Notes: generated from the sequence alone by a model not told the origin. A DNA stretch of 64,000 nucleotides from IMGVR_UViG_3300044568_003163:62001-126000, one strand, 5' to 3'. Shown: positions 1,444 to 60,744, counted from the stretch's first letter. Program-made: numbers and translations.

Positions 1444-1501
1444 GTAAATATAATCAACATTATCTAAAAATGAAAACTTTAGAGCATTTAGTTATTAACA
1501 A
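1444..1501 (-). promoter_or_regulatory. class I promoter cassette (TTGTTAATAAC box + TAnnTTTR -7 element)
   Basis: gttattaacaa at 1491, -7 element at 1445; offset 46. Confidence 0.65.
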
Positions 1502-1508
1502 ATACAAC

Positions 1509-1534
1509 AAAAGCTCAATCTTACGATTAAGCTT
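1509..1534 (-). terminator. intrinsic terminator ending the tRNA array
   Basis: AAAGCTTAATC-GTAA-GATTGAGCTTTT hairpin with U tail on the minus strand. Confidence 0.7.
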
Positions 1535-1592
1535 TATCGAAGGTATATTAGGCCATACCAATAACCAGGACCTTTTCCCTAGGGAAATGTCG

Positions 1593-1675
1593 TGACCAAA
1601 GAGGGACTCGAACCCTCACGCTCAAAGAGCACCAGCTTCTTAGACTGGCGTGTCTACCAATTCCACCACTCGGCC
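1593..1675 (-). tRNA. tRNA-Leu(AAG)
   Basis: Cloverleaf with long variable arm; loop CT-AAG-AA. Confidence 0.85.
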
Positions 1676-1677
1676 GT

Positions 1678-1802
1678 AATGAGCAATCCTATGGAATTAC
1701 TGCAGTTTATCCAAAGGTCGTATATAGCTTGCAGACTAAGATTCTGCTGGATTTTCACCTTCATAAAGCTGGATATCAACGACCCTTATCGCGATTCTCA
1801 TT
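1678..1802 (-). ncRNA. candidate structured ncRNA
   Basis: Nested stems AATGAG/CTCATT, GGTCGT/ACGACC, AGCTT/AAGCT, GCAGA/TCTGC. Confidence 0.5.
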
Positions 1803-1803
1803 G

Positions 1804-1877
1804 TACCCGAGATGGGACTCGAACCCACACTGTACAGGGTTTAAGTCTGATGCCTCTTCCAATTGGGCTACCCGGGC
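1804..1877 (-). tRNA. tRNA-Leu(TAA), short variable loop
   Basis: Cloverleaf; loop CT-TAA-AC; weak anticodon stem. Confidence 0.7.
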
Positions 1878-1880
1878 AAA

Positions 1881-2003
1881 TTAAAGAAGTAAGAAAATGA
1901 ACTCCTTAACAGCTGAACGTTCAATAACTTTAAGAATCATTTTGCTTGTATCTCTAGGATTTGCAACTCCTATAAATTCACAAAATGCTTTTTGTTTATT
2001 CAT
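1881..2003 (-). CDS. 40-aa small ORF
   Basis: MNKQKAFCEFIGVANPRDTSKMILKVIERSAVKEFIFLLL. Confidence 0.4.
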   Translation of the reverse strand: MNKQKAFCEFIGVANPRDTSKMILKVIERSAVKEFIFLLL

Positions 2004-2044
2004 TATTGTTCATTTCAATTTTGTTATTGCATTATTAGGAATAA

Positions 2045-2116
2045 CGATACTATAGGACTCGAACCTATACCTTCCAGCTCGCTCGCCGGAATTCTACCAA
2101 ATTAAACTAAATACCA
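2045..2116 (-). ncRNA. tRNA-like element with non-canonical anticodon loop
   Basis: D arm and T arm (ATAGGTTCGAGTCCTAT) present; 6-nt loop GAGCGA lacks U33. Confidence 0.5.
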
Positions 2117-2153
2117 ACCTTTTTATCTCAATAACAAAAGATGTCCTTCTTTG

Positions 2154-2226
2154 TACCTAAGGAGGGATTCGAACCCACACTGTCATGCTCCTAAGGCATG
2201 TGCCTCTTCCGTTGGGCTACTTAGGC
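2154..2226 (-). tRNA. tRNA-Leu(TAG), short variable loop
   Basis: CATGC-CTTAGGA-GCATG. Confidence 0.85.
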
Positions 2227-2231
2227 AAATT

Positions 2232-2307
2232 GGTAAGTGATGGCCTACTTGTTACCATCTGTCTCTGTTTAGTTGCAACCACTAATCCTGAATGTAGAGA
2301 ACTTACC
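2232..2307 (-). ncRNA. candidate structured ncRNA
   Basis: Closing stem GGTAAGT/ACTTACC with internal hairpins. Confidence 0.4.
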
Positions 2308-2434
2308 TTTTGTTTTATGTTAGCTAATAAACATTGTTTCTAATGTTATTAACATCATCTTTTTAATTTTTGTACATTATAATATACATTAAGCCACAAT
2401 ATGACGTGTTTTGTATATTATAGTGTACATTTTG

Positions 2435-2507
2435 AGCTGACAATCAGGATCGAACTGATGACCTCTTCGATACCAACGAAGTGTTCTTCCAACTGAACTA
2501 TGTCTGC
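2435..2507 (-). tRNA. tRNA-Thr(GGT)
   Basis: CTTCG-TTGGTAT-CGAAG. Confidence 0.85.
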
Positions 2508-2515
2508 ATATTACA

Positions 2516-2612
2516 GGGTTGTTAATTACCTCTTTCGAGGATTTCGGAGTTGAACCGATAGACAAAATTTCAAGTTTCGTGTTTAACCAATAGTTGTTTG
2601 CTGAAACAACCC
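2516..2612 (-). ncRNA. tRNA-core-like RNA without acceptor stem
   Basis: GGGTTGTT/AACAACCC closure around D-like, anticodon-like (CTTGAAA) and T-like arms. Confidence 0.5.
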
Positions 2613-2617
2613 TTTTG

Positions 2618-2691
2618 AGCTGACAGTCAGGATCGAACTGACTCTGTTCCGGGTTACAAATCCGGTGCACCACCATTCATGCGTTGCCAGC
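2618..2691 (-). tRNA. tRNA-Thr(TGT)
   Basis: Loop TT-TGT-AA; cloverleaf. Confidence 0.85.
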
Positions 2692-2701
2692 ATATGTTTC
2701 G

Positions 2702-2772
2702 TTGGGATACTAGGTTTCGAACCTAGGCGGACTGGCTCAAAACCAGTAATGCTACCGTTACATCATATCCCA
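2702..2772 (-). tRNA. tRNA-Gln(TTG)
   Basis: ACTGG-TTTTGAG-CCAGT. Confidence 0.85.
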
Positions 2773-2778
2773 ATGTAG

Positions 2779-2849
2779 TTATCCGAGGTGGATTCGAACC
2801 ACCAATGACTGCACCAAAAACAGTAGTGTTACCGTTACACTATCGGACA
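2779..2849 (-). tRNA. tRNA-Gln(TTG)
   Basis: ACTGT-TTTTGGT-GCAGT. Confidence 0.85.
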
Positions 2850-2850
2850 G

Positions 2851-2924
2851 TGACCATAATAGGATTCGAACCTATAACCGCTGGTTTAGAAAACCAGTGC
2901 TCTATCCAATTGAGCTATATGGCC
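2851..2924 (-). tRNA. tRNA-Arg(TCT)
   Basis: CTGGT-TTTCTAA-ACCAG. Confidence 0.9.
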
Positions 2925-2995
2925 AATTAAGTTCTCCAACCCTGGAACTTATACATATCATCATTAAGCGGTCACATAGAATGTGAGATATGTTG

Positions 2996-3081
2996 AAGAG
3001 AAGATGGGACTCGAACCCACAAACCGAATTAACGGTTAACGGATTAGCAATCCGCTGCAGTACCATTATGCTTACTTCTCT
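2996..3081 (-). tRNA. tRNA-Ser(GCT)
   Basis: GCGGA-TTGCTAA-TCCGT; long variable arm. Confidence 0.9.
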
Positions 3082-3086
3082 ATAAA

Positions 3087-3187
3087 AAGTTAAAGGCAGA
3101 ATTCCAAATCTGCATTTTTATTCTAAAACGAGAATAACGTGAGTTTTATCGATACGTCTATCGAGGCAATTATCACTACTTTAACTT
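3087..3187 (-). ncRNA. candidate multibranch ncRNA
   Basis: AAGTTAAAG/CTTTAACTT closure with three internal hairpins. Confidence 0.45.
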
Positions 3188-3189
3188 AA

Positions 3190-3279
3190 TGGAGGAGAGA
3201 GTGGGATTCGAACCCACGGAACGCTTTCACGCTCAATAGTTTTCAAGACTATCCTAATCAACCTCTCTAGCACCTCTCC
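3190..3279 (-). tRNA. tRNA-Ser(TGA)
   Basis: ATAGT-CTTGAAA-ACTAT; long variable arm; CCA encoded. Confidence 0.9.
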
Positions 3280-3285
3280 ATTATT

Positions 3286-3363
3286 TGGGGTGGAAGACGG
3301 GACTCGAACCCGCGATCTCTAGAACCACAATCTAGCGCTTTAACCAACTAAGCTACAACCACC
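3286..3363 (-). tRNA. tRNA-His(GTG)
   Basis: CTAGA-TTGTGGT-TCTAG; G-1; CCA encoded. Confidence 0.9.
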
Positions 3364-3374
3364 ATGTATAAAAC

Positions 3375-3409
3375 AAAAAAGCTCGATTCATTTGATAGAA
3401 CCGAGCTTT
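3375..3409 (-). terminator. attenuator terminator 1
   Basis: AAAGCTCGGTTC...GAATCGAGCTTTTTT just upstream of tRNA-His. Confidence 0.85.
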
Positions 3410-3443
3410 GCAATTTAGTATTTATATTTTCACATAAGAACCA

Positions 3444-3518
3444 TCACACTTCGGTACTGTTTTCAGATCTTGTTAGATGCTGAAGCGACGTTAACGATAA
3501 TGTACTTGAAGTTCTCAT
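3444..3518 (-). CDS. putative attenuator leader peptide 1 (MRTSSTLSLTSLQHLTRSENSTEV)
   Basis: Lies between promoter and terminator; codons 2-18 are only R/T/S/L/Q/H. Confidence 0.75.
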   Translation of the reverse strand: MRTSSTLSLTSLQHLTRSENSTEV

Positions 3519-3550
3519 TGTTTGTAATTTATTATTTTTTATATATACTG

Positions 3551-3578
3551 TTATATGTCTAAAATTGCTGAGAGTTTC
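3551..3578 (-). promoter_or_regulatory. class II promoter GAAAC-N16-CATATAA
   Basis: Same motif and spacer recur at 6140, 9470, 44907 and 56117. Confidence 0.7.
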
Positions 3579-3603
3579 AAAAAACTTTCAATTTATTTTC
3601 TAG

Positions 3604-3700
3604 TGAAGACAATTGGGATCGAACCAATGGCACGCCTATGTTCCTTATCGATCATACCAATAAGTACTGAAGGTTGCTCTACCAACTGAGCTATATCTTC
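3604..3700 (-). ncRNA. tRNA-like RNA with expanded anticodon domain
   Basis: Intact acceptor, D and T arms; no 7-nt anticodon loop. Confidence 0.65.
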
Positions 3701-3705
3701 ATTTG

Positions 3706-3776
3706 TAGCGGATTAAGGACTCGAACCTCGCCATTGGGTTATGAGCCCGATATGCTACCAATTACACTAAACCGCA
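3706..3776 (-). tRNA. tRNA-Met(CAT), initiator-like, divergent
   Basis: GGG-CTCATAA-CCC; 1:72 mismatch. Confidence 0.65.
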
Positions 3777-3917
3777 AGATGACCTTAAGGATTCGAACCT
3801 TTAACTTGTTTCCTCTTTTAGTTTTGCAAACCTACTCAATTCTACCGTGCCCAATACACTATTGCCAATCGTCATTTTCGAACATGACAGCCTTAAGTTA
3901 ATTACTCTTAAGATTTG

Positions 3918-3989
3918 TAGTCCCACCGGGAATCGAACCCGACTTTTCAGGATGAAAACCTGATGACCTAACCGATAGTCGATAGGACC
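3918..3989 (-). tRNA. tRNA-Glu(TTC)
   Basis: TCAGG-TTTTCAT-CCTGA. Confidence 0.9.
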
Positions 3990-4077
3990 AATTAAGTTAT
4001 ATCAAATTCTCCCGCAGAGATACCGACCCATTGCTGAGCCAGAGAGGACTTGAACCTCTGATTCTCAATAACTAATT
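3990..4077 (-). ncRNA. circularly permuted tRNA-like RNA (YrlA-type topology)
   Basis: Order is stem, T arm, GCAA-capped acceptor-like stem, TA, D-like arm, stem. Confidence 0.55.
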
Positions 4078-4173
4078 TAAAAGAATTAAAGAGTAGAGCT
4101 CTTCAACGATTTCGGCATTTCAGCTGGATCTTTATGCCAACTTCCTAATCCTTAGTCCGTTTAATTCTTGTAG

Positions 4174-4247
4174 TATTATGTACGGGACTCGAACCCGTGT
4201 TATCAACGTGAAAGGCTGACGTCCTAGACCAACTAGACGAACATAAC
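4174..4247 (-). tRNA. tRNA-Glu(TTC)
   Basis: TCAGC-CTTTCAC-GTTGA. Confidence 0.85.
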
Positions 4248-4251
4248 ATTT

Positions 4252-4464
4252 TTAAGCTTCTTCAGAGACAAGTCCTAAAACTTCTTCTCTGTAAATTTTA
4301 TTCAATTCACTTACTTCAATATCGATATTCGTTTGTGGATATCGGTGAAGTAAAATCTTAACTAATCTGATTCGTTTCTCAGCCAAATCTTGATTAAAGT
4401 CCATTTCAATCATTGCATCACTTAAATGAGATTGAATTGCGATTGATAATTTGATAGTTTCCAT
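4252..4464 (-). CDS. hypothetical protein
   Basis: ORF directly after a class I promoter. Confidence 0.65.
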   Translation of the reverse strand: METIKLSIAIQSHLSDAMIEMDFNQDLAEKRIRLVKILLHRYPQTNIDIEVSELNKIYREEVLGLVSEEA

Positions 4465-4488
4465 AATGTGATTGTTTAATTTTAATAA

Positions 4489-4546
4489 GTAAAACTAATC
4501 AATTTAATTGACATATGGAAATTATTTTTCAAAAAGTTATTAACAA
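4489..4546 (-). promoter_or_regulatory. class I promoter cassette
   Basis: Box at 4536; offset 46. Confidence 0.65.
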
Positions 4547-4558
4547 TTTTAAAATAAA

Positions 4559-4732
4559 AAGTTTGTCACCGGCACAGATTGGTGAATACCCAAGTACAAC
4601 CGAATGTACCCGATACCTTACTAACAAAATGAACGGATCTGTGTTTCCTGTATGCGGCAAGTGACCTCCTTCCTTGCTTGTGTTTCCGTATCGATGTGTG
4701 CGGCAACATACCATTTTGAGTTCAACAAACTT
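4559..4732 (-). ncRNA. candidate ~175-nt structured ncRNA
   Basis: AAGTTTGT/ACAAACTT closing stem; GC-richer than flanks; follows tRNA-fMet. Confidence 0.4.
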
Positions 4733-4736
4733 CTTG

Positions 4737-4809
4737 TAGCGGGAGCAGGACTCGAACCTGCGACCTTTGGGTTATGAGCCCACTGAGCTACCAACTGCTC
4801 TATCCCGCA
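4737..4809 (-). tRNA. tRNA-fMet(CAT)
   Basis: GGG-CTCATAA-CCC; unpaired 1:72. Confidence 0.85.
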
Positions 4810-4835
4810 ATATACCTTTTAAGTAGAACCATCAA

Positions 4836-5027
4836 CTATATTTCTGTTGATGATTCTAATTGTCTTAATTTTAAACCTTCTTCAATTGTTTGAATGATGT
4901 CCTCAATTATTTGAGCTCGCGTAACATCAAAGTTACCATTCATTCCATTCAAATCTTTTGCATCAATTGCAATAGATCCTACTGACTTACCGTCTTTCTG
5001 TAATTCAATTACTAATGTATCAAACAT
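4836..5027 (-). CDS. hypothetical protein
   Basis: ORF track; class II-like promoter at 5050-5077. Confidence 0.6.
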   Translation of the reverse strand: MFDTLVIELQKDGKSVGSIAIDAKDLNGMNGNFDVTRAQIIEDIIQTIEEGLKLRQLESSTEI

Positions 5028-5092
5028 AATATAGCTTTTTATTTAATTGTTTTATGCAATTTGAAATAAATTGTTTCTCTTCTTATTAACAT

Positions 5093-5551
5093 CTATCTAC
5101 AGATTCTATCAGCTACATATGAAGCCGAGCATGCATCTGGTTTACATCTAGCGTTATAACCTAATGATTCTACATAACCTAAAGCAGAACGCAGAATTGA
5201 ATTAGATTGATACTTAGGGTCTGGATTAAAATCCAAATCAATAAATGCAGGTTTTTCAATATCATTAGCTTCAAGCCATTGAGCTAATTCAACTGAATCT
5301 TCTACCTCTTTCCAAAGTCTAGTAAATCTATCTAAGATTCTAGGAATTGATTTACGAGAGTAGATAACGTGACCTCCTCGATTACCGTAATGTAAAACAA
5401 TAACCATTGCGTAAATTGTATTTCTTCCAATATTTTGCGAATCTGAACCGATATACATTTTGATGTCTTTACCAGTTGCGAGTTTGTCCTTTAAATAAGG
5501 AATTAAGTCAATTACTTGACCGTTTGTTAACGATTGAAATTTCCGGTCCAT
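5093..5551 (-). CDS. RNase H-like protein, YkuK/DUF458 family
   Basis: IGSDSQ, RLWKEVEDS, IDLDFN and ADR motifs. Confidence 0.8.
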   Translation of the reverse strand: MDRKFQSLTNGQVIDLIPYLKDKLATGKDIKMYIGSDSQNIGRNTIYAMVIVLHYGNRGGHVIYSRKSIPRILDRFTRLWKEVEDSVELAQWLEANDIEKPAFIDLDFNPDPKYQSNSILRSALGYVESLGYNARCKPDACSASYVADRICR

Positions 5552-5571
5552 GATTATTAAATTTATGTTAG

Positions 5572-5642
5572 AGGCGAGTATAGGATTCGAACCTATGTAA
5601 CTGATTTTGCAGACCAGCGCCTAACCGCTCGGCCAACTCGCC
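5572..5642 (-). tRNA. tRNA-Cys(GCA)
   Basis: CTGGT-CTGCAAA-ATCAG; U73. Confidence 0.9.
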
Positions 5643-5647
5643 ATTTG

Positions 5648-5719
5648 TGACTCTAGAGAGACTCGAACTCCCATCTCCTGATCCGTAGTCAAGTGTTCTA
5701 TCCATTGAACTATAGAGCC
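5648..5719 (-). tRNA. tRNA-Arg(ACG)
   Basis: CTTGA-CTACGGA-TCAGG. Confidence 0.9.
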
Positions 5720-5728
5720 ATTATTTTG

Positions 5729-5801
5729 TCGGGAAGACAGGACTCGAACCTGCGGCCTCATGCTCCCAAAGCACGCGATCTACCAACTGATCTACTTCCC
5801 G
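5729..5801 (-). tRNA. tRNA-Pro(TGG)
   Basis: CGTGC-TTTGGGA-GCATG. Confidence 0.9.
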
Positions 5802-5848
5802 TGGCAGAGAGGCTTTTGAAGTGCCCTGCTAGTTCATCTTTTAATTTG

Positions 5849-5922
5849 TCGAATAGACAGGAATCGAACCTGCTAACTGATACGTCCAAGGTACCCGTGC
5901 TTAAAACCTTAGTCACTACTCG
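5849..5922 (-). tRNA. tRNA-Pro(TGG), divergent
   Basis: GGTAC-CTTGGAC-GTATC; atypical D arm. Confidence 0.7.
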
Positions 5923-5931
5923 TTTAAAAAC

Positions 5932-5967
5932 AAAAAAGCCTGAATCGGTTGAATGATTCAGGCTTTT
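5932..5967 (-). terminator. attenuator terminator 2
   Basis: AAAAGCCTGAATC...GATTCAGGCTTTTTT just upstream of tRNA-Pro. Confidence 0.85.
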
Positions 5968-5988
5968 ATATGATGATGTTACTTTATA

Positions 5989-6084
5989 TCATTCAAAAAC
6001 CTGCATACCATTCTCACATGCCTCAGGACGAGGGCATTCTACTGTTAACTGCGATGTTGTTAGTATGTGTGAAAGTATTAACAT
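5989..6084 (-). CDS. putative attenuator leader peptide 2 (MLILSHILTTSQLTVECPRPEACENGMQVFE)
   Basis: Lies between promoter and terminator; E-C-P-R-P-E-A-C-E core. Confidence 0.7.
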   Translation of the reverse strand: MLILSHILTTSQLTVECPRPEACENGMQVFE

Positions 6085-6139
6085 TTTAATTTTTATTAGC
6101 AAAGACTCTTTATCTTTGTTTAGTTCTTTTATATATCTT

Positions 6140-6167
6140 TTATATGTTCCGTTATTGCGGAAGTTTC
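6140..6167 (-). promoter_or_regulatory. class II promoter GAAAC-N16-CATATAA
   Basis: Exact motif. Confidence 0.7.
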
Positions 6168-6316
6168 AAAATTATTTTATTCTTTTCTATTTGTGCTTTA
6201 ATCTTAGCAATCTTTTCTGGACTAGGATTTCTATCTATCGTATACGAAACACCCATCTTGTCCATGTAATCGTAAAGAAGTTGCATATCTTCATTAGTAG
6301 TTTTAGTTGTTTTCAT
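6152..6316 (-). CDS. 54-aa hypothetical protein (not in ORF track)
   Basis: MKTTKTTNEDMQLLYDYMDKMGVSYTIDRNPSPEKIAKIK... Confidence 0.55.
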   Translation of the reverse strand: MKTTKTTNEDMQLLYDYMDKMGVSYTIDRNPSPEKIAKIKAQIEKNKIILKLPQ

Positions 6317-6328
6317 AATAACTATTTG

Positions 6329-6402
6329 AGCGGATATTCGGATTCGAACCGAAACTTCAGACTTGGAAGGCCCACGTGCTAGCCGTTAAACACCATACCC
6401 GC
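6329..6402 (-). tRNA. tRNA-Gly(TCC)
   Basis: TGGGC-CTTCCAA-GTCTG. Confidence 0.85.
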
Positions 6403-6412
6403 ATTTTGTTTG

Positions 6413-6485
6413 AGCAATAAATCAGATTCGAACTGACGACCTCTACCTTGGCAAGGTAATGCTCTACCAACTGAGCTATTATTGC
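6413..6485 (-). tRNA. tRNA-Gly(GCC)
   Basis: TTACC-TTGCCAA-GGTAG. Confidence 0.9.
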
Positions 6486-6552
6486 ATTTGAAGGACTTGC
6501 ACCTTCTGGACATGGTTTGTTTCGCCTAAGTCGCCATGTCAACAGACCCGAG

Positions 6553-6624
6553 AGGGCAGAGTGAGATTCGAACTCACGACCAGTTGATTAACAGTCAACT
6601 GCTCTACCGCTGAGCTATCCACCC
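6553..6624 (-). tRNA. tRNA-Asn(GTT)
   Basis: GTTGA-CTGTTAA-TCAAC. Confidence 0.9.
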
Positions 6625-6630
6625 TTATTG

Positions 6631-6741
6631 CAGGAATGTAAGGAATCGAACCTTAGCATCTTCCGAGACAGGGAGTAATTTATGCAGAATACAATCTTCG
6701 CAGATTGAGTTTTAAGCGTGCTACCATTACACCACATTCCT
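6631..6741 (-). ncRNA. tRNA-like RNA with ~60-nt replacement of the anticodon domain
   Basis: Perfect acceptor, D and T arms; internal CAATCT-GCGA-AGATTG hairpin. Confidence 0.7.
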
Positions 6742-6749
6742 GTATTTTG

Positions 6750-6866
6750 TGGGCTCATATGGGCTCGAACCATAATCTCTTCCTAATGACATCCTACCAT
6801 ACTAAAAAGGAATCGAACCTTAGACTCATTATCGAGAAAGCGCTTTGCCAATTAAGCTAATCGCCC
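6750..6866 (-). ncRNA. tRNA-like RNA with a second T-loop/D-loop inside the anticodon domain
   Basis: TAATGA/TCATTA stem encloses AAGGTTCGATTCCTT and AGTATGGTAG. Confidence 0.65.
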
Positions 6867-6872
6867 ATGTAG

Positions 6873-7004
6873 TGAAGAATCCTAGACTCGAACTAGGAAT
6901 GTCAATTAAGACGCCGGTTTTACATCCTTTAAATTGCTGAATAAACACTTTGCACAGTGTTTGCCTTTTTGGACCGGAGCGTTTACCAATTCCGCCAATT
7001 CTTC
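6873..7004 (-). ncRNA. class II tRNA body with ~54-nt anticodon loop
   Basis: CCGGT/ACCGG stem encloses a long loop ending TGTAAA; variable arm present. Confidence 0.7.
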
Positions 7005-7011
7005 ATTATTG

Positions 7012-7083
7012 TTCTCCCGCTGGGAGTCGAACCCAGCCTCATAGATTAAAAGTCTATTGCCCACACCAGTCTGCTACGAGAGA
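7012..7083 (-). tRNA. tRNA-Lys(TTT)
   Basis: ATAGA-CTTTTAA-TCTAT. Confidence 0.85.
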
Positions 7084-7169
7084 TTGTAAAGTTTTCTATT
7101 GCCAACCTCTCAACAGTGTAGAGTATTGACCTATCTATGTTTTCGCTTCATGTTCATTATATTATTTAG

Positions 7170-7243
7170 TGGCCAAGCCTGGACTCGAACCAGGGACCTT
7201 CGCATTATGAGTGCGCCGCTCTAACCAACTGAGCTACATGGCC
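7170..7243 (-). tRNA. tRNA(CAT), probably Ile2 (lysidine type)
   Basis: Loop CTCATAA; GGCC acceptor resembles Ile2 tRNAs. Confidence 0.75.
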
Positions 7244-7433: not shown

Positions 7434-7472
7434 AAATTGTAAGTTTTGAATGGACTTACAACCATTGATAGA

Positions 7473-8811: not shown

Positions 8812-8869
8812 ACAAATATAAACAATGTCATTGACATATGAAAATATTTAATCAAATAGTTATTAACAA
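8812..8869 (-). promoter_or_regulatory. class I promoter cassette inside the tRNA array
   Basis: TATATTTG at 8813-8820, box at 8859; offset 46. Confidence 0.75.
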
Positions 8870-11445: not shown

Positions 11446-11503
11446 ACAAATATAATCAATGTCTTCGACACTTGAAAATAATTTCTCATTAAGTTATTAA
11501 CAA
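11446..11503 (-). promoter_or_regulatory. class I promoter cassette
   Basis: TATATTTG at 11447-11454, box at 11493; offset 46. Confidence 0.75.
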
Positions 11504-14864: not shown

Positions 14865-16064
14865 TTAGTCTTCAATTACTTCTTCGATAAATTGTTCAAC
14901 ATCTGAGTCGAAGTCTTCCTCATCTGGTGTTTTGTCAGTGATACCGAAGATTTTGTTAAACTTAGCTTCTTCAGAAAGTAAGATTTCCTTTTCTTTCTGA
15001 AGACGTTTCTTAATATCATCGTCTCTATCTAGACGTTTTTGGTCGTATTCAACTTCGTTTACGTTATCTAAAGAGAAGTAAATCTTTTCATGTTTAAATC
15101 CTCGACGGTTTTTAGTTACTTTTGCGTATCTATCACCAGAGAATTCAGATGAATATCGAAGTTCAATCATTCCGGTAGTATTGTGTTTTAATTTATTGGA
15201 TCCTACGAAATTACCACCTTTGGTAACTTGTTGAATCGCTAAAAATGAAGTGTATTTGTTTTCGGCATTTTTACCTTTATTGTTTTGGACCATTATATCA
15301 ATCATCCATTTTTCAGCTTGAGTACGATTCATTCCTGAAGAAGCTTGAATAGATTCTTGAACCTCGACGAAGGAGTCGATAAGTATAATATCCCATCCTT
15401 GATTGTAGGTTGATTCTAATACTTCGGCAGCATTATCATCGAGATAATCACAAAGAAATAATGTAGGGATTTTACCGAAAGCTGGATATCGTTGAACATA
15501 ACCAAACATATCGATATCGTTCATTTCGCCTGAGATAAATAAGACCTTTTTAGAAGGGTCGTTTTTCTTGATTTTTGCAAGGATATCAAGAGTTTGAGTA
15601 GATTTACCAATTCCTGGGTCACCTATAATCATGTAGTTTGTAGCAGGATAGATTCCACCTTCAGATGAAAACATATAGTCGATTGAATCGTTAGTTTTCA
15701 TTGGAATAAAGATTGAAGGGTCGTAAGATAAATCAGCAACTTGTACTAAGTTAATTTTTACTGGAGTTTTAATCATAGGATTTACGGTAGAAGTCGAAGT
15801 TTTTCCTTTGAAAGGTACGATGAAATATTCATCTTTTTTATCTGAATTGGATTTTAAAACCCAGTGTTGATTTGAACGATACATTCCTTGGAATGTAAAA
15901 TCAGTGTTTTCGAATTGTTCGCCTATCGTGTATTGATTTGCGAATTTAGAAGCCTGAAAACGTTTTTGGCATTTAATAAGGATTGCGTTTGAAGTTTCGA
16001 TTCTTTCCATAAATAGTGTAATTAGATTAATTTGATATACAAATATAACACATATATTTGACAA
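14865..16064 (-). CDS. RadA/Sms-like RecA-superfamily ATPase
   Basis: GDPGIGKST, ISGEM, ILIDS, QVTKGG..VG..LKH, KNR; true start about 16008. Confidence 0.85.
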   Translation of the reverse strand: MSNICVIFVYQINLITLFMERIETSNAILIKCQKRFQASKFANQYTIGEQFENTDFTFQGMYRSNQHWVLKSNSDKKDEYFIVPFKGKTSTSTVNPMIKTPVKINLVQVADLSYDPSIFIPMKTNDSIDYMFSSEGGIYPATNYMIIGDPGIGKSTQTLDILAKIKKNDPSKKVLFISGEMNDIDMFGYVQRYPAFGKIPTLFLCDYLDDNAAEVLESTYNQGWDIILIDSFVEVQESIQASSGMNRTQAEKWMIDIMVQNNKGKNAENKYTSFLAIQQVTKGGNFVGSNKLKHNTTGMIELRYSSEFSGDRYAKVTKNRRGFKHEKIYFSLDNVNEVEYDQKRLDRDDDIKKRLQKEKEILLSEEAKFNKIFGITDKTPDEEDFDSDVEQFIEEVIED

Positions 16065-16096
16065 TAAAAAATGTTTTGACTAAAAGTTATTAACAA
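16039..16096 (-). promoter_or_regulatory. class I promoter cassette
   Basis: Box at 16086; offset 46. Confidence 0.75.
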
Positions 16097-16342: not shown

Positions 16343-16400
16343 ACAAATATAAGCAAAAAACTCGACATATGGAAATGTCGAGTCATATAGTTATTAACAA
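16343..16400 (-). promoter_or_regulatory. class I promoter cassette with embedded hairpin
   Basis: CTCGACAT..ATGTCGAG; box at 16390. Confidence 0.75.
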
Positions 16401-18953: not shown

Positions 18954-19010
18954 ACAAATATAAACAATTGCCTCGACATACTAAAATATCGAGGCTTAAG
19001 TTATTAACAA
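18954..19010 (-). promoter_or_regulatory. class I promoter cassette with embedded hairpin
   Basis: Box at 19000; offset 45. Confidence 0.75.
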
Positions 19011-22501: not shown

Positions 22502-22569
22502 ACAAATATAATCAAAAAGCTCGATACGTGGAAATATCGAGCTTATTATTTTCAAAAAGTTATTAACAA
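22502..22569 (-). promoter_or_regulatory. class I promoter cassette with embedded hairpin
   Basis: Box at 22559; offset 56. Confidence 0.7.
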
Positions 22570-24651: not shown

Positions 24652-24710
24652 ATATTTTGTTTAATTTTATAAGACAAATATAAAACAAATTCCCGATACT
24701 TGAAAATTTA

Positions 24711-27058: not shown

Positions 27059-27116
27059 ACAAATATAACAAAAAGCCTCGATACATGGAAATGTCGAGGC
27101 TTAAAGTTATTAACAA
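27059..27116 (-). promoter_or_regulatory. class I promoter cassette with embedded hairpin
   Basis: Box at 27106; offset 46. Confidence 0.75.
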
Positions 27117-30050: not shown

Positions 30051-30107
30051 ACAAATATAACAAAAAAACTCGATACTTGGAAATATCGAGTCGAAAGTTA
30101 TTAACAA
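30051..30107 (-). promoter_or_regulatory. class I promoter cassette with embedded hairpin
   Basis: Box at 30097; offset 45. Confidence 0.75.
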
Positions 30108-41584: not shown

Positions 41585-42285
41585 TACAATTGTTGAGCTT
41601 TACGTTTGATTTCATCTTTTGTTGCTTCTAATTTCTTCAACGATTTTTTGATTTTTTCTAATGCAAAATCATTTGAAATTTCTTTCATCCAAAGTTTATG
41701 AGTTTCTTTGGCCTCTTTCGTGGATTCTTCTAGGAATGAATAAACATTAAGACCCCAATGAGGCGTGAACTTAACGAATTCCATTTTAAACATTGCCGTT
41801 TTGTAAAGACCAAATCTATTTGCATAACGAGGATTTCTTCGAGAATTATAATTTTTATATCGTTGTATTATGATTGATGGTGATTTATTTTCGTAATTTT
41901 CGAGTTCATTTACATATCGTTCTATGAGCTCGTGGGCTAATGAAAAATCTACATACACATCTTTTATTTGTGCATAGATAGGAGATTGTTTATCTTCTGG
42001 TGCTATATAACCAAGCAACATATTAGGTCCACCATCCCAACCATTGTTAGGCTCGAAATTAGAAGAGTATTTATTAAGAATGGTTCGGTCACCCTTTTTG
42101 ATGTGACATTCCTCATTTTCCATTTCTTTACCAACACTAATAATAAATTCTTTAAGCGTACTTTCGTAGAAATTTACATTTTCTTTATGAAGACGATATC
42201 TTTCAGTTTCAATTTCTTGAGCTTTCTTAATTGCCTCAAGTTTTTTGATTCGTCGTTTATCTCGGATGAATTGAAATATACCCAT
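41584..42285 (-). CDS. hypothetical protein
   Basis: ORF track. Confidence 0.6.
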   Translation of the reverse strand: MGIFQFIRDKRRIKKLEAIKKAQEIETERYRLHKENVNFYESTLKEFIISVGKEMENEECHIKKGDRTILNKYSSNFEPNNGWDGGPNMLLGYIAPEDKQSPIYAQIKDVYVDFSLAHELIERYVNELENYENKSPSIIIQRYKNYNSRRNPRYANRFGLYKTAMFKMEFVKFTPHWGLNVYSFLEESTKEAKETHKLWMKEISNDFALEKIKKSLKKLEATKDEIKRKAQQL

Positions 42286-42578
42286 TATTTTAAAGATTTA
42301 ACTTGTGATTCGATTTCGTTGTACATTGCTTCAACTAATTTGTTTGAACGTTTGTCGTAGTGAATACAAGTAGATGCATGAATTACTGTGGCATGATTAT
42401 CTCTTCCGTGTTGTTTAGCAATGGCAAGTAAATTAAGGCCGGTATTAAATCTTGAAAAGTACATTGACAAATGTCGTGCTTGAACTACGTTAGCTTTCCT
42501 TGAAGGAGAATTGATTTGACTGATTGAGATTCCAGTTACTTGCGAAACGATAGTTTGAATTTGTGGTACTGTTGACAT
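42285..42578 (-). CDS. stand-alone DnaA C-terminal (domain IV) DNA-binding protein
   Basis: SR...V.ARH.SMY..R and RDNHATVIHA match the DnaA signature RDHTTV.HA. Confidence 0.85.
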   Translation of the reverse strand: MSTVPQIQTIVSQVTGISISQINSPSRKANVVQARHLSMYFSRFNTGLNLLAIAKQHGRDNHATVIHASTCIHYDKRSNKLVEAMYNEIESQVKSLK

Positions 42579-42655
42579 AATGTATTTGTTTAAGAATTAT
42601 AAGTAAAACTAATCATTTTTTGCGACATAAAGAAATAAAAACTGTTAAATTAATG

Positions 42656-43030
42656 TTAAAGTTTTTCATAATGATGTTGAGCCCAATATGCAGGACCTCC
42701 ATAATAAGTACAGATTTCTTCACCAATTTCTATATCTCGAATAGCAAAAAAGGTTACGGCTTTATGGTCTCTAGGAAATTTCCAAGATGCATTATTTTTA
42801 TCTGCATGATTGTAGATGCAACCATATCCGAAAGGAATAATGTACTCAAAATCTCGACCGTTCGTAGGTAATATGAACCGATAATCTAAGAGCAAATCAC
42901 CATCCTTAGGAATAATCACATAATGGCATTCCTCAATAATTTCATCTTTAAGGATTTTTTCAGTAGCGAATACACCTAATCCTTTACCTTCGGTATGGTC
43001 GATTTTTATTTTTGTAGGAACTTTAAACAT
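42656..43030 (-). CDS. SET-domain methyltransferase
   Basis: KGLGVFA, YNH...N, RDI..GEEI..YYG. Confidence 0.9.
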   Translation of the reverse strand: MFKVPTKIKIDHTEGKGLGVFATEKILKDEIIEECHYVIIPKDGDLLLDYRFILPTNGRDFEYIIPFGYGCIYNHADKNNASWKFPRDHKAVTFFAIRDIEIGEEICTYYGGPAYWAQHHYEKL

Positions 43031-43759: not shown

Positions 43760-43816
43760 GTAAATATAACAAAAAAACTCGATACTAAAAAATATCGAGT
43801 CGAAAGTTATTAACAA
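43760..43816 (-). promoter_or_regulatory. class I promoter cassette with embedded hairpin
   Basis: Box at 43806; offset 45. Confidence 0.75.
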
Positions 43817-46527: not shown

Positions 46528-46603
46528 AAGTGGTATTTATTTATAGTACAAATATAATCATTTTCCTATTCAATAGGAAATTAAATTGAATTAATTATTA
46601 ACA

Positions 46604-47197
46604 TTATGCTCTTGGTCGTCCTAACATAATTTTGTCGTGAGCTCCACCAGCAATATTTCTAGTGTACCAACCATCACCAGAAGCATCTGGCATAGTACCA
46701 ATCCATTGAACTTGTTTACCTAAAACTTTAGTAACTACATCAATATCAGTTACTACTGGCACATCATATTTGTTGATTAAGATTTCCGCGATTTTACCAG
46801 AAACTTCGATATAGAATCCCATCTTTTTAAGGTCGACTCCTCTAGCTTCAATGTAAGCACGTTTAGCATCTTTGGTTCCGTCATGTCCTACTCCTGAGAA
46901 TTTAACTCCAAATTTAGTTCTTTGACCAAACATTACCATATCAAAATCTCTGGTTCCGTGAATATCTTCACCTTCCCAATAATTCCAATCTGGATCTGCA
47001 AACACATCTTCAGGAGATTTTATTTTAATGTGACCTCCAATTTCGGCATATGCCGTTTGTATCAAATCGAAAAATTCTCCAGCTAATTCTGGATATTTCT
47101 TATGATTGAATAGTAAAGCCTTTCCTCTTGGTGGTTTTAAATCACCAGAAGAAGTTATTTCGTTTACGTACTCTTCGTATTTTTTAAATGTTGTCAT
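46604..47197 (-). CDS. CTS-like-peptide protein, unknown domain
   Basis: MTTFKKYEEYVNE; resembles the next gene. Confidence 0.65.
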   Translation of the reverse strand: MTTFKKYEEYVNEITSSGDLKPPRGKALLFNHKKYPELAGEFFDLIQTAYAEIGGHIKIKSPEDVFADPDWNYWEGEDIHGTRDFDMVMFGQRTKFGVKFSGVGHDGTKDAKRAYIEARGVDLKKMGFYIEVSGKIAEILINKYDVPVVTDIDVVTKVLGKQVQWIGTMPDASGDGWYTRNIAGGAHDKIMLGRPRA

Positions 47198-57079: not shown

Positions 57080-58168
57080 TTAGAATGGTTGATTTAGGAC
57101 CAAATTAGCGGTATCAAAGTTTTTGGCAAGTATATCACCTGCAACCATTTGTAAGTGTGTATCAGAATTGGCTTTTTTCTCAAAGCCATAATTATGTGAT
57201 GCGAAATCAGTTACTCCATTAATGACATCCCATACTGAAACTCCTGTTCTTAGATTAGCCTTTTGTTTGGCATTTAACTTAGTAGTATCTAAATTAGCAC
57301 CATGTATTCTATTATATGTGTTTTTATGGCCTTTGAAAAACATCTCTAACTCATTTTGTTGGATATTAGAGTTATTAAGGAGTAAATTAGCACCTTGCTC
57401 TAGCTCTAATAGTGAGGCAGGAGTATTAATAGCTTCAATAACCTTTTGGTTAAATGCGGTAGGTACGAAATTCATTTTTTCGATACGTTCCATATGCTCA
57501 TAAAATTCTTGCCATGTTCTTGCATCCATACTACGAAGATTGAAGGACTCATCGAATGCTCTTAAGACATTACCATTTGTACATACTAGACGGTCCATAT
57601 AAGGGTCAGCCTGGAGTCCATTTGCCGTTCTGGCCAAAGATATACCAGTTTGAAATACCTCATTGGATAGGTTTTCCACTTGGTGTTGATTACCTTGACC
57701 ATTAATTGCTCTTATATAGATATTACCATTTCCTTTATTGAAATCGGTTGAGGTAATTTCCAAATTATGAGTATTGGCTAGACGTTCGAAAGTATCAAAG
57801 TATGTTTCAGCAGAGATAATGGCTGAAGCACCTTCTTTTTGTATACGTGAGATAATACGATCGGGTGTAACTGCTATAGTTACTTGCATAGACTTGTTTT
57901 GGCCAATTGCATTTTTTAGGGAATTTAAAAACATTTGAGCTCCATCTTCACCTACTGATGAGGTAAGATTTTTTAATCCAGTTGAGGAGAATCCTACTAT
58001 CTGAAGTAAGTCTTTAATAGCTTGTCGGTCGACTCCTAATTTTAGACCATTGAATTCTACTAGGTCCATAGTAATAAATCTTAAATCCGTAAGAGCAATA
58101 GTTTTTCTTAGGGGTTGATTGCGTAGGCTGGTTTCTTTGAAATTAGCGTACTGTGCTTGTGATATCAT
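57080..58168 (-). CDS. DUF932/DUF945-like protein
   Basis: RLVCTNG and WDVINGVT motifs. Confidence 0.7.
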   Translation of the reverse strand: MISQAQYANFKETSLRNQPLRKTIALTDLRFITMDLVEFNGLKLGVDRQAIKDLLQIVGFSSTGLKNLTSSVGEDGAQMFLNSLKNAIGQNKSMQVTIAVTPDRIISRIQKEGASAIISAETYFDTFERLANTHNLEITSTDFNKGNGNIYIRAINGQGNQHQVENLSNEVFQTGISLARTANGLQADPYMDRLVCTNGNVLRAFDESFNLRSMDARTWQEFYEHMERIEKMNFVPTAFNQKVIEAINTPASLLELEQGANLLLNNSNIQQNELEMFFKGHKNTYNRIHGANLDTTKLNAKQKANLRTGVSVWDVINGVTDFASHNYGFEKKANSDTHLQMVAGDILAKNFDTANLVLNQPF

Positions 58169-58209
58169 ATTGAATGAATTTTTTTGTGTCCTGATGGACT
58201 AGTTATGTA

Positions 58210-58485
58210 TTACAGTTTCGGTGCTTCAACTTTGGTACTTGGTTTTAACTTAATAAAGTAGGATGTTTCCATCGTAGATACTCTAATAGATTTCTGACCA
58301 TTTGTTTCGTCAAATACAACTGCTTTTACCGCTTCATATCCTTTGCATAAGTCTCTTACAAGGCCGATTGCAATGATAGGTTCTTTCGCATTGTTTTGAA
58401 CCAATTGTTTGATTTTGAAATACTGATCTTTTCTTAAACGGTTAGTTACTGGAACCTCATCGTTAACACTTTCTGGTCTTGCCAT
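58210..58485 (-). CDS. hypothetical protein
   Basis: ORF track. Confidence 0.6.
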   Translation of the reverse strand: MARPESVNDEVPVTNRLRKDQYFKIKQLVQNNAKEPIIAIGLVRDLCKGYEAVKAVVFDETNGQKSIRVSTMETSYFIKLKPSTKVEAPKL

Positions 58486-58524
58486 AGTTTTCTTATTTTA
58501 TATGATTAATTTGATAATTAGTTT

Positions 58525-58788
58525 TTAGTAAAAGTAGCCATTGTGAACAATTTGTATAGCTTGTTCGTATTGTTGACCGACTTTTTCTTGTCCTTCTGAA
58601 CCTAAGTAAGAAGGAGTAATTTCTAAGATGCATGTTCCTTTAACAGTATCGATACTCACTAACTTTGACCTTAAGGTAGCAGAATGATTATCTGGACCGA
58701 TTTTTCCTATTACGGATTGAAGGTCGTAAGCCATTCTGTTAATAGTTTGTTGTTGGTACTCAGCGAATTTTGAATCGGACATAAACAT
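58525..58788 (-). CDS. hypothetical protein
   Basis: Has its own class I promoter at 58810-58877 (offset 56). Confidence 0.6.
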   Translation of the reverse strand: MFMSDSKFAEYQQQTINRMAYDLQSVIGKIGPDNHSATLRSKLVSIDTVKGTCILEITPSYLGSEGQEKVGQQYEQAIQIVHNGYFY

Positions 58789-58981
58789 AATATGTGTTTT
58801 TAATTATAAGTAAATCTAATCATTTTAGGCGAAACTAGGAAATGATTTGTGCATTATTTTCAAAAAGTTATTAACAATTGAGAGGTGTAGCATATCGATT
58901 TAATGCTCTTAATATTTACTCGGTGAGCACCTCTCAATGTTAATTATCAGTTTACATATTGTAAGTGTTGAGGTTTACAAA

Positions 58982-59272
58982 TTATTTCACTAAGAACCTT
59001 GAAGCTCCAGTTCTTCTTGACTCAACGATTTCAGATAAAATGTTTTTGGTATTTACCACTTGTACGTAGTTTTTTCTAGCGTATAATTGAACAAATACTT
59101 TTCTAGACATATTAATGGTTTTCTCAACGATTGCGTTGGTAGTAGTCATTTGGATTGCATTTTCGTTTAAGGCAGTAATCTCGAAAATGTTGTTAGCACC
59201 ATTACGGATAATTTGACCTTTTGCAATTGTAGCGTTGATTGTTGTTTCTGAGGTAGTGTTGATTGTTGTCAT
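58982..59272 (-). CDS. hypothetical protein
   Basis: Has its own promoter near 59300. Confidence 0.6.
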   Translation of the reverse strand: MTTINTTSETTINATIAKGQIIRNGANNIFEITALNENAIQMTTTNAIVEKTINMSRKVFVQLYARKNYVQVVNTKNILSEIVESRRTGASRFLVK

Positions 59273-59470
59273 AATGAATAAGTTGTTGTTTTTAATTATA
59301 AGTAAATCTAATCATTATTGGCGATACTTGAAAATAAAAACTGTTAAATTTTTGTTAAAGTTTTGAAACTTTTTTGGTCAGCCAGATTATCAAAAGGCAG
59401 GTAATAACACTAGCTATTACAAAGCCTAAGAATAAGCCCATGACCTGGATGGCTATAGTAAATGGATCCA

Positions 59471-59845
59471 TTAGTAGAAAAGAGATAAAAGGTTATTGTA
59501 ATCCGCAGGAGTAGACACTCTAAATGTCTTCATATCTGGTACACAAGTTCCTTTATAATCATCAGTACTGTACTTAGCTTTTGCAAGTTCCATTGCCTCT
59601 TCTTTAGTGTGAGCATATTCACTGTTCCAACCTCCACCTTCAAAGTTAAATAAGAATTCGTATTTAGCTGAGGTAGCCTTTTCTAATTGGTTGATGACGT
59701 CTTGATTTTCAGCCATTTGCTCGAGAATTTCGTTTTCCATTACATCAGATAATTCCATTACATTACACATAGCGTGCATATTAATGTTACGATTCTTAAG
59801 GATAATAATTCTTTCTAAAGCTGATTGTCTCTGTGCTTGTGTCAT
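59471..59845 (-). CDS. hypothetical protein
   Basis: ORF track. Confidence 0.6.
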   Translation of the reverse strand: MTQAQRQSALERIIILKNRNINMHAMCNVMELSDVMENEILEQMAENQDVINQLEKATSAKYEFLFNFEGGGWNSEYAHTKEEAMELAKAKYSTDDYKGTCVPDMKTFRVSTPADYNNLLSLFY

Positions 59846-59969
59846 GATTATTTTATTTTGTTAAAGGTTTTATATAGTCGAAAAAAACTCGTTTTTAAGG
59901 AAATTCTTTGATTGATATTCAAATTACCGTGAATGGTATAAAAATGCTTTAATGCCATAATGTATATTA

Positions 59970-60320
59970 TTAGTTAATGAATGATCCGTTTTCGTCGATT
60001 AGGTTTAGGTTATCTAGAGTCTCATAACCAAGAGGAGTAATGTGCATGGTTCCATAAGCATCGGGAGACCAATAAGGATTACGGGTTTTGTTTCCGTCCT
60101 TGTCGATGTTAAATTTTTTCTCACCTTCTTGGATATTGACAAGACCTTTAGTAGATAGTGAAGCGAAAACTCCACCTCTTTTACTTTTAGGTATTGAACA
60201 GGCATCGTACACTGAGAAATCCCATAAGATAGATTCTCGTCCATTTTCATAGAAATCCGAGTAAGTAATAGATTTCAGAGCAAGTAGCTCGAGGTCGGTA
60301 AGGGTGATTGGAGTTGTCAT
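59970..60320 (-). CDS. winged-helix-like small protein
   Basis: GVFASL..KGLV...IT..G pattern; own promoter at 60344-60411 (offset 56). Confidence 0.5.
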   Translation of the reverse strand: MTTPITLTDLELLALKSITYSDFYENGRESILWDFSVYDACSIPKSKRGGVFASLSTKGLVNIQEGEKKFNIDKDGNKTRNPYWSPDAYGTMHITPLGYETLDNLNLIDENGSFIN

Positions 60321-60744
60321 AACGTATTGTTTTAATTTGATAAGTAAAACTAATCATTTTAGGCGACAAATGGAAATGTTTCGGCAACTATTTTTAGAAA
60401 GTTATTAACAATTTAGAGTGGCCGAAGTTGTGAAAAACCAGGTAGTAGACTAGCTGATGTTGTACTAGGGTTGATAAAAGCCACAAAAAGCCAGACGGGA
60501 GTCTAGCTGGGTGTATAAAGGTGAATCGGATTTCGCTTCGCCGGTATTGTGGGTGAGCCATTAGGCCTTTCTGGTATTGGAGTACTTTGCATTTTATTGA
60601 CGACGGCGAGTATCGAACGAGCTCATCTATTACATTTTTGTCTGCTCGGTGGACTAGGAGTAATAATCTTTCATTGAAATGCTCCTCCTCGCACGGGTGC
60701 ACGATAGGCACACATGTGCTGGAGTGGCTTACTTACTCGCTACC

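Follow-up and report, generated by a model that had tools for sequence, protein, structure and literature searches.

The 64,000-nt window analyzed here, bases 62001-126000 of the IMG/VR record IMGVR_UViG_3300044568_003163, comes from a freshwater phage of Bacteroidota. In it, promoters of the host type carry a short conserved sequence, hereafter the box, at one of a few fixed distances upstream that differ by whole helical turns. Very probably the box is an upstream activator-type site, since a conserved sequence locked in phase with the promoter is the signature of a protein bound upstream and facing RNA polymerase. The phage also encodes a 97-aa protein, mini-DnaA, that consists of DnaA domain IV alone, and this protein is quite possibly the binder, an assignment we make tentatively. 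The fuller picture is possible but more doubtful: jumbo phages of freshwater Bacteroidota would have captured the DNA-binding domain of host DnaA, exchanged an aspartate for asparagine to read TTATTAACA in place of the host's box, and used the product as a global activator of the Class I type, locked in phase, at 35-45 early or middle promoters, with control of its own gene through a pair of TTAACA half-sites. Factor and sites would also have spread to an unrelated phage lineage (G424).

The complete record, labeled G000 here, has 294,034 bp and 33% GC, and is 91% complete by CheckV. Its sequence is present in many lake-water metagenomes, and megablast and tblastn searches of GenBank phages returned no match to it. 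Over the whole 294 kb, a simple call of open reading frames (ORFs) placed 431 of 455 (~95%) on the minus strand, a pattern repeated in the relatives G001 and G007, and all genes of the window are on the minus strand. The box therefore lies upstream of the core element TAnnTTTR (the -7 element) and reads TTGTTAATAAC in the sense of transcription; the form GTTATTAACA(A), under which an earlier, sequence-only reading of the window had described it, is that of the plus strand.

The 10-mer GTTATTAACA has 15 exact copies in the window against 0.42 expected, a count reached in 0 of 100 shuffles, and 27 copies against 10.95 expected when up to one mismatch is allowed. Across the whole genome we counted 33 exact copies of the 11-mer, all on the minus (gene) strand and 0 on the plus strand. 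Promoter modules with the box number 35 genome-wide. A position weight matrix of the core promoter picked out 44 promoters genome-wide, every one on the minus strand; 36 of them have the box (the 35 modules and a variant at 46594). Two exact copies of the 10-mer in the window are not modules: one at 2345-2354 (+), within the tRNA region, has no -7 element, and one at 35816-35825 (-), on the opposite strand, coincides in part with a CATATAA motif.

The modules share a common order. First is the upstream gene's stop codon (within the box in some modules), followed by TTGTTAATAAC, TTT, and a variable stretch that contains ATTTyC; then come TTGnTTA overlapping TAnnTTT[G/A], a conserved A-rich leader (cTTATAAATTAAA) and the ATG. 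This ATG lies 24-41 nt past the -7 element, except in the module at 8813-8869 (189 nt), where tRNA genes follow. Genes behind box promoters include part of a tRNA array, genes of nucleotide metabolism and RNA repair, a NAPRTase gene, a gene for a CCA-adding-like enzyme, many small ORFs, and a 200-aa sigma factor of the extracytoplasmic function (ECF) type. The sequence-only reading had listed 14 box sites in the window, and all 14 proved to be promoter modules. They are given below with the gene for mini-DnaA and the box-less promoters of the same family; the gap is the stretch between the box's final C and the TA of TAnnTTTR, and hairpin stabilities (dG, folding free energy) are in kcal/mol.

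1445..1501, minus strand: promoter module; box 1491-1500, gap 38, -7 element TATATTTA at 1445-1452; a CATATAA motif follows at ~1434
4490..4546, minus strand: promoter module; box 4536-4545, gap 38, -7 element TAGTTTTA at 4490-4497
8813..8869, minus strand: promoter module between tRNA-Ala, which it follows directly, and further tRNA genes; box 8859-8868, gap 38, -7 element TATATTTG
11447..11503, minus strand: promoter module of ORF 10105-11421; box 11493-11502, gap 38, -7 element TATATTTG
16040..16096, minus strand: promoter module; box 16086-16095, gap 38, -7 element TATATTTG
16344..16400, minus strand: promoter module; box 16390-16399, gap 38; terminator hairpin (dG -13.7) before the -7 element
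18955..19010, minus strand: promoter module of the NAPRTase gene (17397-18932); box 19000-19009, which includes the TAA stop of ORF 19004-19357, gap 37; hairpin dG -16.5
22503..22569, minus strand: promoter module of the 48-nt class; box 22559-22568; hairpin dG -14.4
27060..27116, minus strand: promoter module; box 27106-27115, gap 38; hairpin dG -14.0
30052..30107, minus strand: promoter module of the PolyA_pol-head (CCA-adding-like) gene (29283-30026); box 30097-30106, gap 37; hairpin dG -11.9
43761..43816, minus strand: promoter module; box 43806-43815, which includes the stop of ORF 43810-44889, gap 37; hairpin dG -12.6
46549..46604, minus strand: promoter module with the variant box TGTTAATAAT at 46594-46603, gap 37
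58811..58877, minus strand: promoter module of the 48-nt class; box 58867-58876, -7 element TAGATTTA
60345..60411, minus strand: promoter module of the 48-nt class; box 60401-60410, -7 element TAGTTTTA
42285..42578, minus strand: mini-DnaA, a 97-aa stand-alone DnaA domain IV protein
42604..42660, minus strand: promoter of the mini-DnaA gene, box-less; -7 element TAGTTTTA at 42604-42611, TTTAACA-N4-TTTAACA at 42643-42660
59303..59359, minus strand: second promoter of the pair class, of ORF 58982-59272; TTTAACA-N4-TTTAACA at 59342-59359, -7 element TAGATTTA at 59303-59310
24675..24682, minus strand: -7 element of a box-less core promoter of the same family, with one TTTAACA upstream

The gap takes only a few values. 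Of the modules in G000, 27 have one of 37/38 nt and the other 8 one of 48 nt, with none between; within the window the gap is 37/38 nt at 11 sites, including the variant at 46594, and 48 nt at 22559, 58867 and 60401. The spacings of 45-46 and 56 bp in the sequence-only reading are these same gaps of 37/38 and 48 nt, measured differently. Its two classes one helical turn apart are borne out, and relatives add a third class, two turns out. In six phages (G000, G001, G004, G006, G007 and G008) we found gaps of 37 (n=10), 38 (n=57), 48 (n=14), 49 (n=1), 59 (n=3), 60 (n=1) and other values (n=6), placing 86 of the 92 pairs of box and -7 element at 37/38, 48/49 or 59/60 nt. The six odd values are second matches within modules that also hold a regular match. 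Another phage, G424, has gaps of 38 (six times), 48 and 59 nt, and in G008 two tandem boxes 21 nt apart have gaps of 38 and 59 nt. With the T of TAnnTTTR set at -12, the centre of the box falls near -55.5, -65.5 or -76.5. The DNA between box and -7 element varies between modules and between phages, and the box is kept letter for letter. Because the box and its helical steps are conserved while the spacer has diverged, both the sequence of the box and the face of the helix on which it lies are under selection.

In Bacteroidota, the housekeeping sigma factor uses TAnnTTTG as its -7 element, with the T at -12 and the G at -5, together with TTTG at -33 (PMC6847099). This -7 element is present as TAnnTTT[G/A] in 35 of 35 modules; in its subtype TAGTTTTA, positions -10 and -5 are G and A, both rare in the host. 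The -33 place in G000 is held by ATTTyC, 20 nt upstream of the -7 element, giving TTTC or TTTT rather than the TTTG expected at 19-21 nt, and G424 has TTTG 19 nt upstream. Judged by their sequence, these core promoters belong to the host type, that of Bacteroidota sigma-A, as the sequence-only reading had called them; we found both the -7 element TAnnTTT[G/A] and a TTTy element 20 nt upstream at the -33 place.

In 15 of the 35 modules a hairpin followed by a T-run, an intrinsic terminator of the upstream gene, lies between the box and the -7 element (dG -11.9 to -16.5 kcal/mol, z -4 to -7.5), and the -33-like ATTTyC then occupies the loop or the upper end of the stem. A strong hairpin is missing from the remaining 20, which still keep both box and spacing; this ties the box to the promoter and not to the terminator. 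The hairpin cassettes of the window are at 16344-16400, 18955-19010, 22503-22569, 27060-27116, 30052-30107 and 43761-43816; a single cassette of 57-67 bp ends one transcript and starts the next. Our search of the literature on the box sequence and on promoter motifs of Bacteroidota phages found nothing relevant.

The same box heads promoters in G004 (31 kb, 43% GC), G006 (72 kb), G007 (254 kb), G005 (122 kb, with the same pattern of box positions as G007), G008 (8 kb), G424 (146 kb) and the ENA contigs L456-L460, and the phages that use it span 32-43% GC. G001 has a TGTTAATAAC-type box, TGTTAA(T/A)AA(C/T), at ~6 promoters with gaps of 37/38 nt, including that of its sigma factor gene. G424 has just 10 proteins in common with G000, and a structural protein found even in the distant relative G421 is missing from it. 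Of the cases in which the box occurs together with a DnaA_C protein, G424 is the most independent.

The product of ORF 42285-42578 matches the Pfam family PF08299, Bac_DnaA_C (E = 1.2e-17; score 64.2 bits, where the curated cut-off is 31.5), and the DnaA chains of the PDB (E = 9e-6 to 2e-3). It aligns only to residues ~355-444 of B. subtilis DnaA and has neither the AAA+ domain III nor the domain I of a full-length initiator; it is thus DnaA domain IV alone, as had been recognized from the sequence. It is the sole DnaA_C match in G000 and belongs to a family of stand-alone proteins of 97-103 aa. With 38% identity to Flavobacterium DnaA domain IV, it is closer to that than to other DnaA. Its recognition helix begins NHATVIHA, where host Bacteroidota DnaA has DHATVLHA and E. 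coli DHTTV, and the Asp-to-Asn change at the start of the helix is fixed in the family. Residues 433 and 435 of DnaA, which we take from structure 1J1V, presumably make DNA-facing contacts. The arginine of the basic loop, equivalent to E. coli R399, is kept in mini-DnaA and invariant in 21 homologues; in E. coli, Arg399 recognizes the TTA at the 5' end of the DnaA box through the minor groove (PMC5742627). The 9-mer TTATTAACA keeps this TTA and departs from TTATnCACA at C6 only. Mini-DnaA appears to be copied from the DNA-binding domain of host DnaA, with Asn in place of Asp at the start of the recognition helix, and this replacement, paired with the C-to-A change in the site, makes a plausible switch of specificity.

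The promoter of the mini-DnaA gene has the same core and no box. As the sequence-only reading had noted, it carries the pair TTTAACA-N4-TTTAACA instead, and the same pair recurs at 59342-59359. The TTAACA hexamers end at ~-55 and -44 (G000, G004, L456/457), an arrangement found 1-3 times per genome and on the gene strand only. TTAACA is the 3' half of the 9-mer TTATTAACA, in opposite orientation. In G007, the mini-DnaA promoter has the box two turns out.

G000, G001, G004, G007/G005 and G424 all code for a DnaA_C protein whose helix fits NH(A/G)xV (the scan for relatives used the recognition helix as its pattern), and every box-using lineage with enough sequence encodes a DnaA_C protein. The helix reads NHATVLHA in G004, whose protein is 32% identical, NHGTVIHA in G007/G005 and NHANVIH in G424. 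Box modules lie within 10-20 kb of the mini-DnaA gene in L456, L458 and L460. Nine contigs with 0-3 stray boxes, among them the distant relative G421, have no DnaA_C protein.

We propose that a sequence-specific protein binds TTGTTAATAAC and acts on RNA polymerase from upstream in the manner of a Class I activator; once bound, it would touch the polymerase, for instance at the alpha C-terminal domain, and raise transcription of early or middle genes. Mini-DnaA, if it is that protein, would bind the DnaA-box-like 9-mer TTATTAACA as a monomer and would control its own gene through two weaker TTAACA sites. In a first step, host polymerase and the box-binding factor would drive the early and middle genes, including that of the phage sigma factor; in a second, this sigma factor would drive later genes through promoters of a GAAACT-N16-CATATAA class. 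A small third class, with the TTAACA pair, would include the mini-DnaA gene.

The sigma factor (200 aa, G000:C1:201598-202200, or L096:1598-2200, minus strand) lies outside the window and matches Sigma70_r2 (2e-9) and r4_2 (2.3e-14), with a weak ECF match. Its gene stands behind a box promoter in G000, as does that of its homologue in G001 (gap 37). The motif of the second class, GAAACT-N16-(n)CATATAAyA, lies 7-60 nt before ATGs, in the window at 1434, 12881, 21167, 25169, 35817, 44913, 56123 and 58504, and also elsewhere. CATATAA has 47 copies within 80 nt of gene starts, ~15 of them strict copies with an upstream AAAC at the right distance. The motif is also enriched in G001; it resembles an ECF-type promoter and may be read with the phage sigma factor.

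Several observations weigh against mini-DnaA as an activator bound at the box, or against the box as a DnaA box. TTATTAACA matches TTATnCACA at 8 of 9 positions, and position 6 is A, not C, in all 33 exact copies, at odds with the DnaA-box consensus TTATNCACA or TTWTNCACA, both of which include C6; to our knowledge, C6 is kept in every described DnaA box. TTATCCACA is missing from the phage genome, as are clusters of relaxed DnaA boxes, and copies of the box are single and spread over promoters instead of clustered at an origin or a dnaA promoter. By the consensus test the box is not a DnaA box. Of the likeness claimed in the sequence-only reading, the agreement at 8 of 9 positions remains; it fails at C6 and in the lack of TTATCCACA or a cluster of relaxed boxes. 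In ~60 other phage contigs that encode proteins with an NHATV[IL]HA helix, neither the box nor its parts are enriched (709 kb). G001 keeps the same helix and has a different box, ATGTAATATCCGTGTA, at ~14 promoters, ~58 nt before the -7 element TATATTAG (for example at G001:C1:163270-163350, 175620-175700 and 188590-188670, in L083-L086); having two classes of upstream element, it therefore probably has two factors. The fragments G006 (14 boxes, 72 kb, 32% complete) and G008 (8 kb) have no DnaA_C gene. Within the G000/G001/G007 clade, co-occurrence of box and protein is confounded by common descent. Three freshwater metatranscriptomes gave only scattered 150-280-nt contigs of the region, too sparse for start sites, and we infer activation rather than repression from the position of the box only.

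Another phage protein, unrecognized by family searches, could bind the box as an activator or regulator site while mini-DnaA does something else. The common occurrence of NHATV-helix proteins in box-less phages, the second box of G001 and the 14 boxes of G006 all speak for this, as does the coverage of the family searches, which took in ~45 of the ~455 ORFs. We nevertheless consider it somewhat unlikely: few proteins are common to G000, G004, G007 and the unrelated G424, and DnaA_C alone among those shared by all box-using lineages has a sequence-specific DNA-binding domain, the others being enzymes (a HAD RNA-repair domain, thymidylate synthase, an AEP-like protein); no further candidate with the right distribution was seen. 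Mini-DnaA might also act in replication and not in transcription; it would then either sit on the DnaA boxes of the host, so that initiation there stops, or mark a phage origin. Its derivation from host-type DnaA domain IV fits such a role, as do the name of the nearest PHROGs family (DnaA-like replication initiation protein) and the related NHATV proteins of small phages without box promoters. A replication role is unlikely, however, in view of the missing TTATCCACA and relaxed-box cluster and of the fixed Asp-to-Asn change, which argues for a non-host target; GafY was first taken for a replication factor and then shown to be a promoter-binding activator (PMC9632790).

Still less do we expect the binder to be a host protein that the phages exploit, whether host DnaA, another conserved DNA-binding protein of Bacteroidota, or the RNA polymerase alpha C-terminal domain acting in a UP-like way. 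An identical box in phages of 32-43% GC, probably with different hosts, is what a very conserved host protein would give, and where the recognition helix starts, only a single residue separates domain IV of host DnaA from the phage protein. UP elements of other bacteria overlap the region -51 to -60, where the box lies as well, but the A/T tracts without a fixed G or C at -40 to -60 that define them are not what we see: the G and C of TTGTTAATAAC are invariant, and the box also stands at -66 and -77. In the host genomes sampled the box stays at chance level. A pattern of box, N34/35 and TAnnTTTR had at least 120 matches in 185,579 species genomes, mostly in Bacteroidota and some upstream of orthologous genes among the matches listed, yet controls led us to reject a host-wide regulon. 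The 10-mer is no commoner than the reversed pattern in five Bacteroidota genomes; in 401 evenly sampled ones, the box with TAnnTTTR at a gap of 20-50 nt gave 19 matches against 13 for the control, with no spacing peak and 1 match at the phage spacing, a rate that, scaled to the collection, accounts for the at least 120. The dnaA promoter regions of Flavobacterium, Carboxylicivirga and Aquimarina (loci L363, L364 and L365) have no box. Boxes near dnaA in two genomes proved to lie inside coding regions, the dnaA promoters themselves being box-less, and a five-copy 'cluster' in Flavobacterium sp. PS2 was ordinary AT-rich DNA. By these comparisons the box is not a host element; the relative G421, defined by structural genes, has neither the box nor a DnaA_C gene. 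Regulation by host DnaA, which the sequence-only reading had suggested as one option, finds no support, given the three box-less dnaA promoters and the lack of enrichment in the host genomes. The canonical TTATCCACA itself has 34 copies against 73 for the control in the PS2 chromosome (G010), not clustered, and the DnaA box of Bacteroidota may differ from the textbook one. It is highly improbable that the box binds no protein, being instead the conserved end of a duplicated terminator-promoter cassette (as in T4 PeSL) or an RNA-level signal at the 3' end of the upstream transcript (a TAATAA double stop, then a terminator). The box does often abut or contain the upstream stop codon, the strong hairpin with its T-run follows just after it in those 15 modules, and the modules are repeated cassettes. 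Against this stand the 20 modules that keep the box without a hairpin, the distance to the -7 element, fixed in steps of 10-11 nt across phages too despite the diverged spacer, a box that follows a tRNA gene and not an ORF, and the tandem boxes of G008.

Around the mini-DnaA gene lie several genes of other kinds. Directly upstream is that of a 124-aa SET-domain protein (42656-43030, minus strand; Pfam SET 5.7e-12). A 641-aa GAF-PAS-PAS histidine kinase (37961-39886, minus strand) adjoins a 143-aa receiver-only response regulator (37517-37948, minus strand), a two-component system unusual in a phage; this pair is also found beside mini-DnaA in the relatives L456/L457. A probable lysis pair at 39899-41244 (minus strand), also near mini-DnaA and with synteny kept in relatives, comprises a 115-aa SMR/DMT-like membrane protein and a PG_binding_1 + Glyco_hydro_19 protein. 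Other proteins had been considered as box binders and were set aside: a 233-aa ORF downstream of mini-DnaA and coupled to it (no family match, absent from relatives), the conserved 115-aa neighbor (a membrane protein, as above), ORF 21465-22079 (right distribution, but AEP-like by atlas features and probably part of an RNA-repair set) and ORF g202290 (a kinase-like ATPase).

Elsewhere in the window, the tRNA array at 1592-9268 comprises 35 genes, every one of them on the minus strand; for the gene at 2044-2116 the call gave a four-base anticodon (agcg) and assigned no amino acid. An RNA-repair and NAD-salvage set is spread over window positions 17397-18932, 21465-22079 and 29283-30026 and over G000:60649-62269 and 202290-202691. 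It contains NAPRTase, two HAD_SAK_2 proteins, a PNK-like ATPase, the PolyA_pol-head CCA-adding-like enzyme and an AEP-like 204-aa protein, and parts of it are common to the otherwise unrelated phage G424.

The timing of gene expression in Bacteroidota phages is almost uncharted, and the promoter rules of their hosts (-33/-7 elements, no Shine-Dalgarno) are unlike those of the textbook. The cis-element described here is sharply defined, and its spacing follows an exact rule (38, 48 or 59 nt) that yields a clear prediction, with one candidate factor. Should mini-DnaA prove to be the binder, it would be the first instance in a phage of a DNA-binding domain from a replication initiator made into a global transcription activator, in parallel to GafY, and would offer a natural one-residue change in DNA specificity. 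The cassettes with a terminator inside the promoter may serve as parts for genetic tools in Flavobacteriia.

The arrangement has its closest counterparts in several known systems. At Class I promoters of E. coli, CRP sits at -61.5, -72.5, -82.5 and -92.5. The phage promoters likewise have a single specific site upstream of the core, at integral helical turns only (38, 48 and 59 nt), a likeness of position alone. They differ in having a Bacteroidota sigma-A -33/-7 promoter, an asymmetric site of 10-11 bp in place of a 22-bp dyad, and centres at -55.5/-65.5/-76.5, and activation is deduced here from position. Late promoters of P2-like phages, served by P2 Ogr and P4 Delta, have a common upstream element near -55, the dyad TGT-N12-ACA, and their activator is a small zinc-finger protein that contacts the alpha subunit of RNA polymerase. 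Here, too, many phage promoters share one common upstream element near -55, with no TGT-N12-ACA dyad, and the candidate factor is a helix-turn-helix domain. The PeSL cassettes of T4 join an early promoter to a stem-loop. Those of the present phage are similarly repeated, compact and placed between genes, with a host-type promoter joined to a stem-loop; they differ in that the hairpin is set within the promoter itself, flanked by box and -7 element, its loop carrying the -33-like element, and in the extra invariant box upstream.

A DnaA box is a 9-mer bound by one domain IV monomer (PMC5742627). TTATTAACA is likewise a 9-mer that keeps the 5' TTA read by Arg399 and five of the six letters of the 3' TnCACA (PMC5742627), whereas the phage sites have A in place of C6 and are single, at promoters, on one strand and phase-locked instead of clustered at an origin. 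GafY of Caulobacter is a stand-alone homologue of DnaA domain IV that binds and activates many promoters of a gene transfer agent, including its own (PMC9632790). Mini-DnaA resembles GafY, and the N-terminal half of GafA of Rhodobacter, in being a DnaA-domain-IV-like protein without an AAA+ domain. The likeness is at the level of the domain, and the host of GafY is alphaproteobacterial; the partner GafZ is encoded next to GafY, whereas the neighbors of mini-DnaA are not conserved or are a membrane protein, and no adjacent or fused GafZ-like partner was seen. The system proposed here would combine activation of the Class I kind, a promoter set of the P2 Ogr type and a factor of the GafY type, in a phylum in which transcription control by phages is essentially unexplored.

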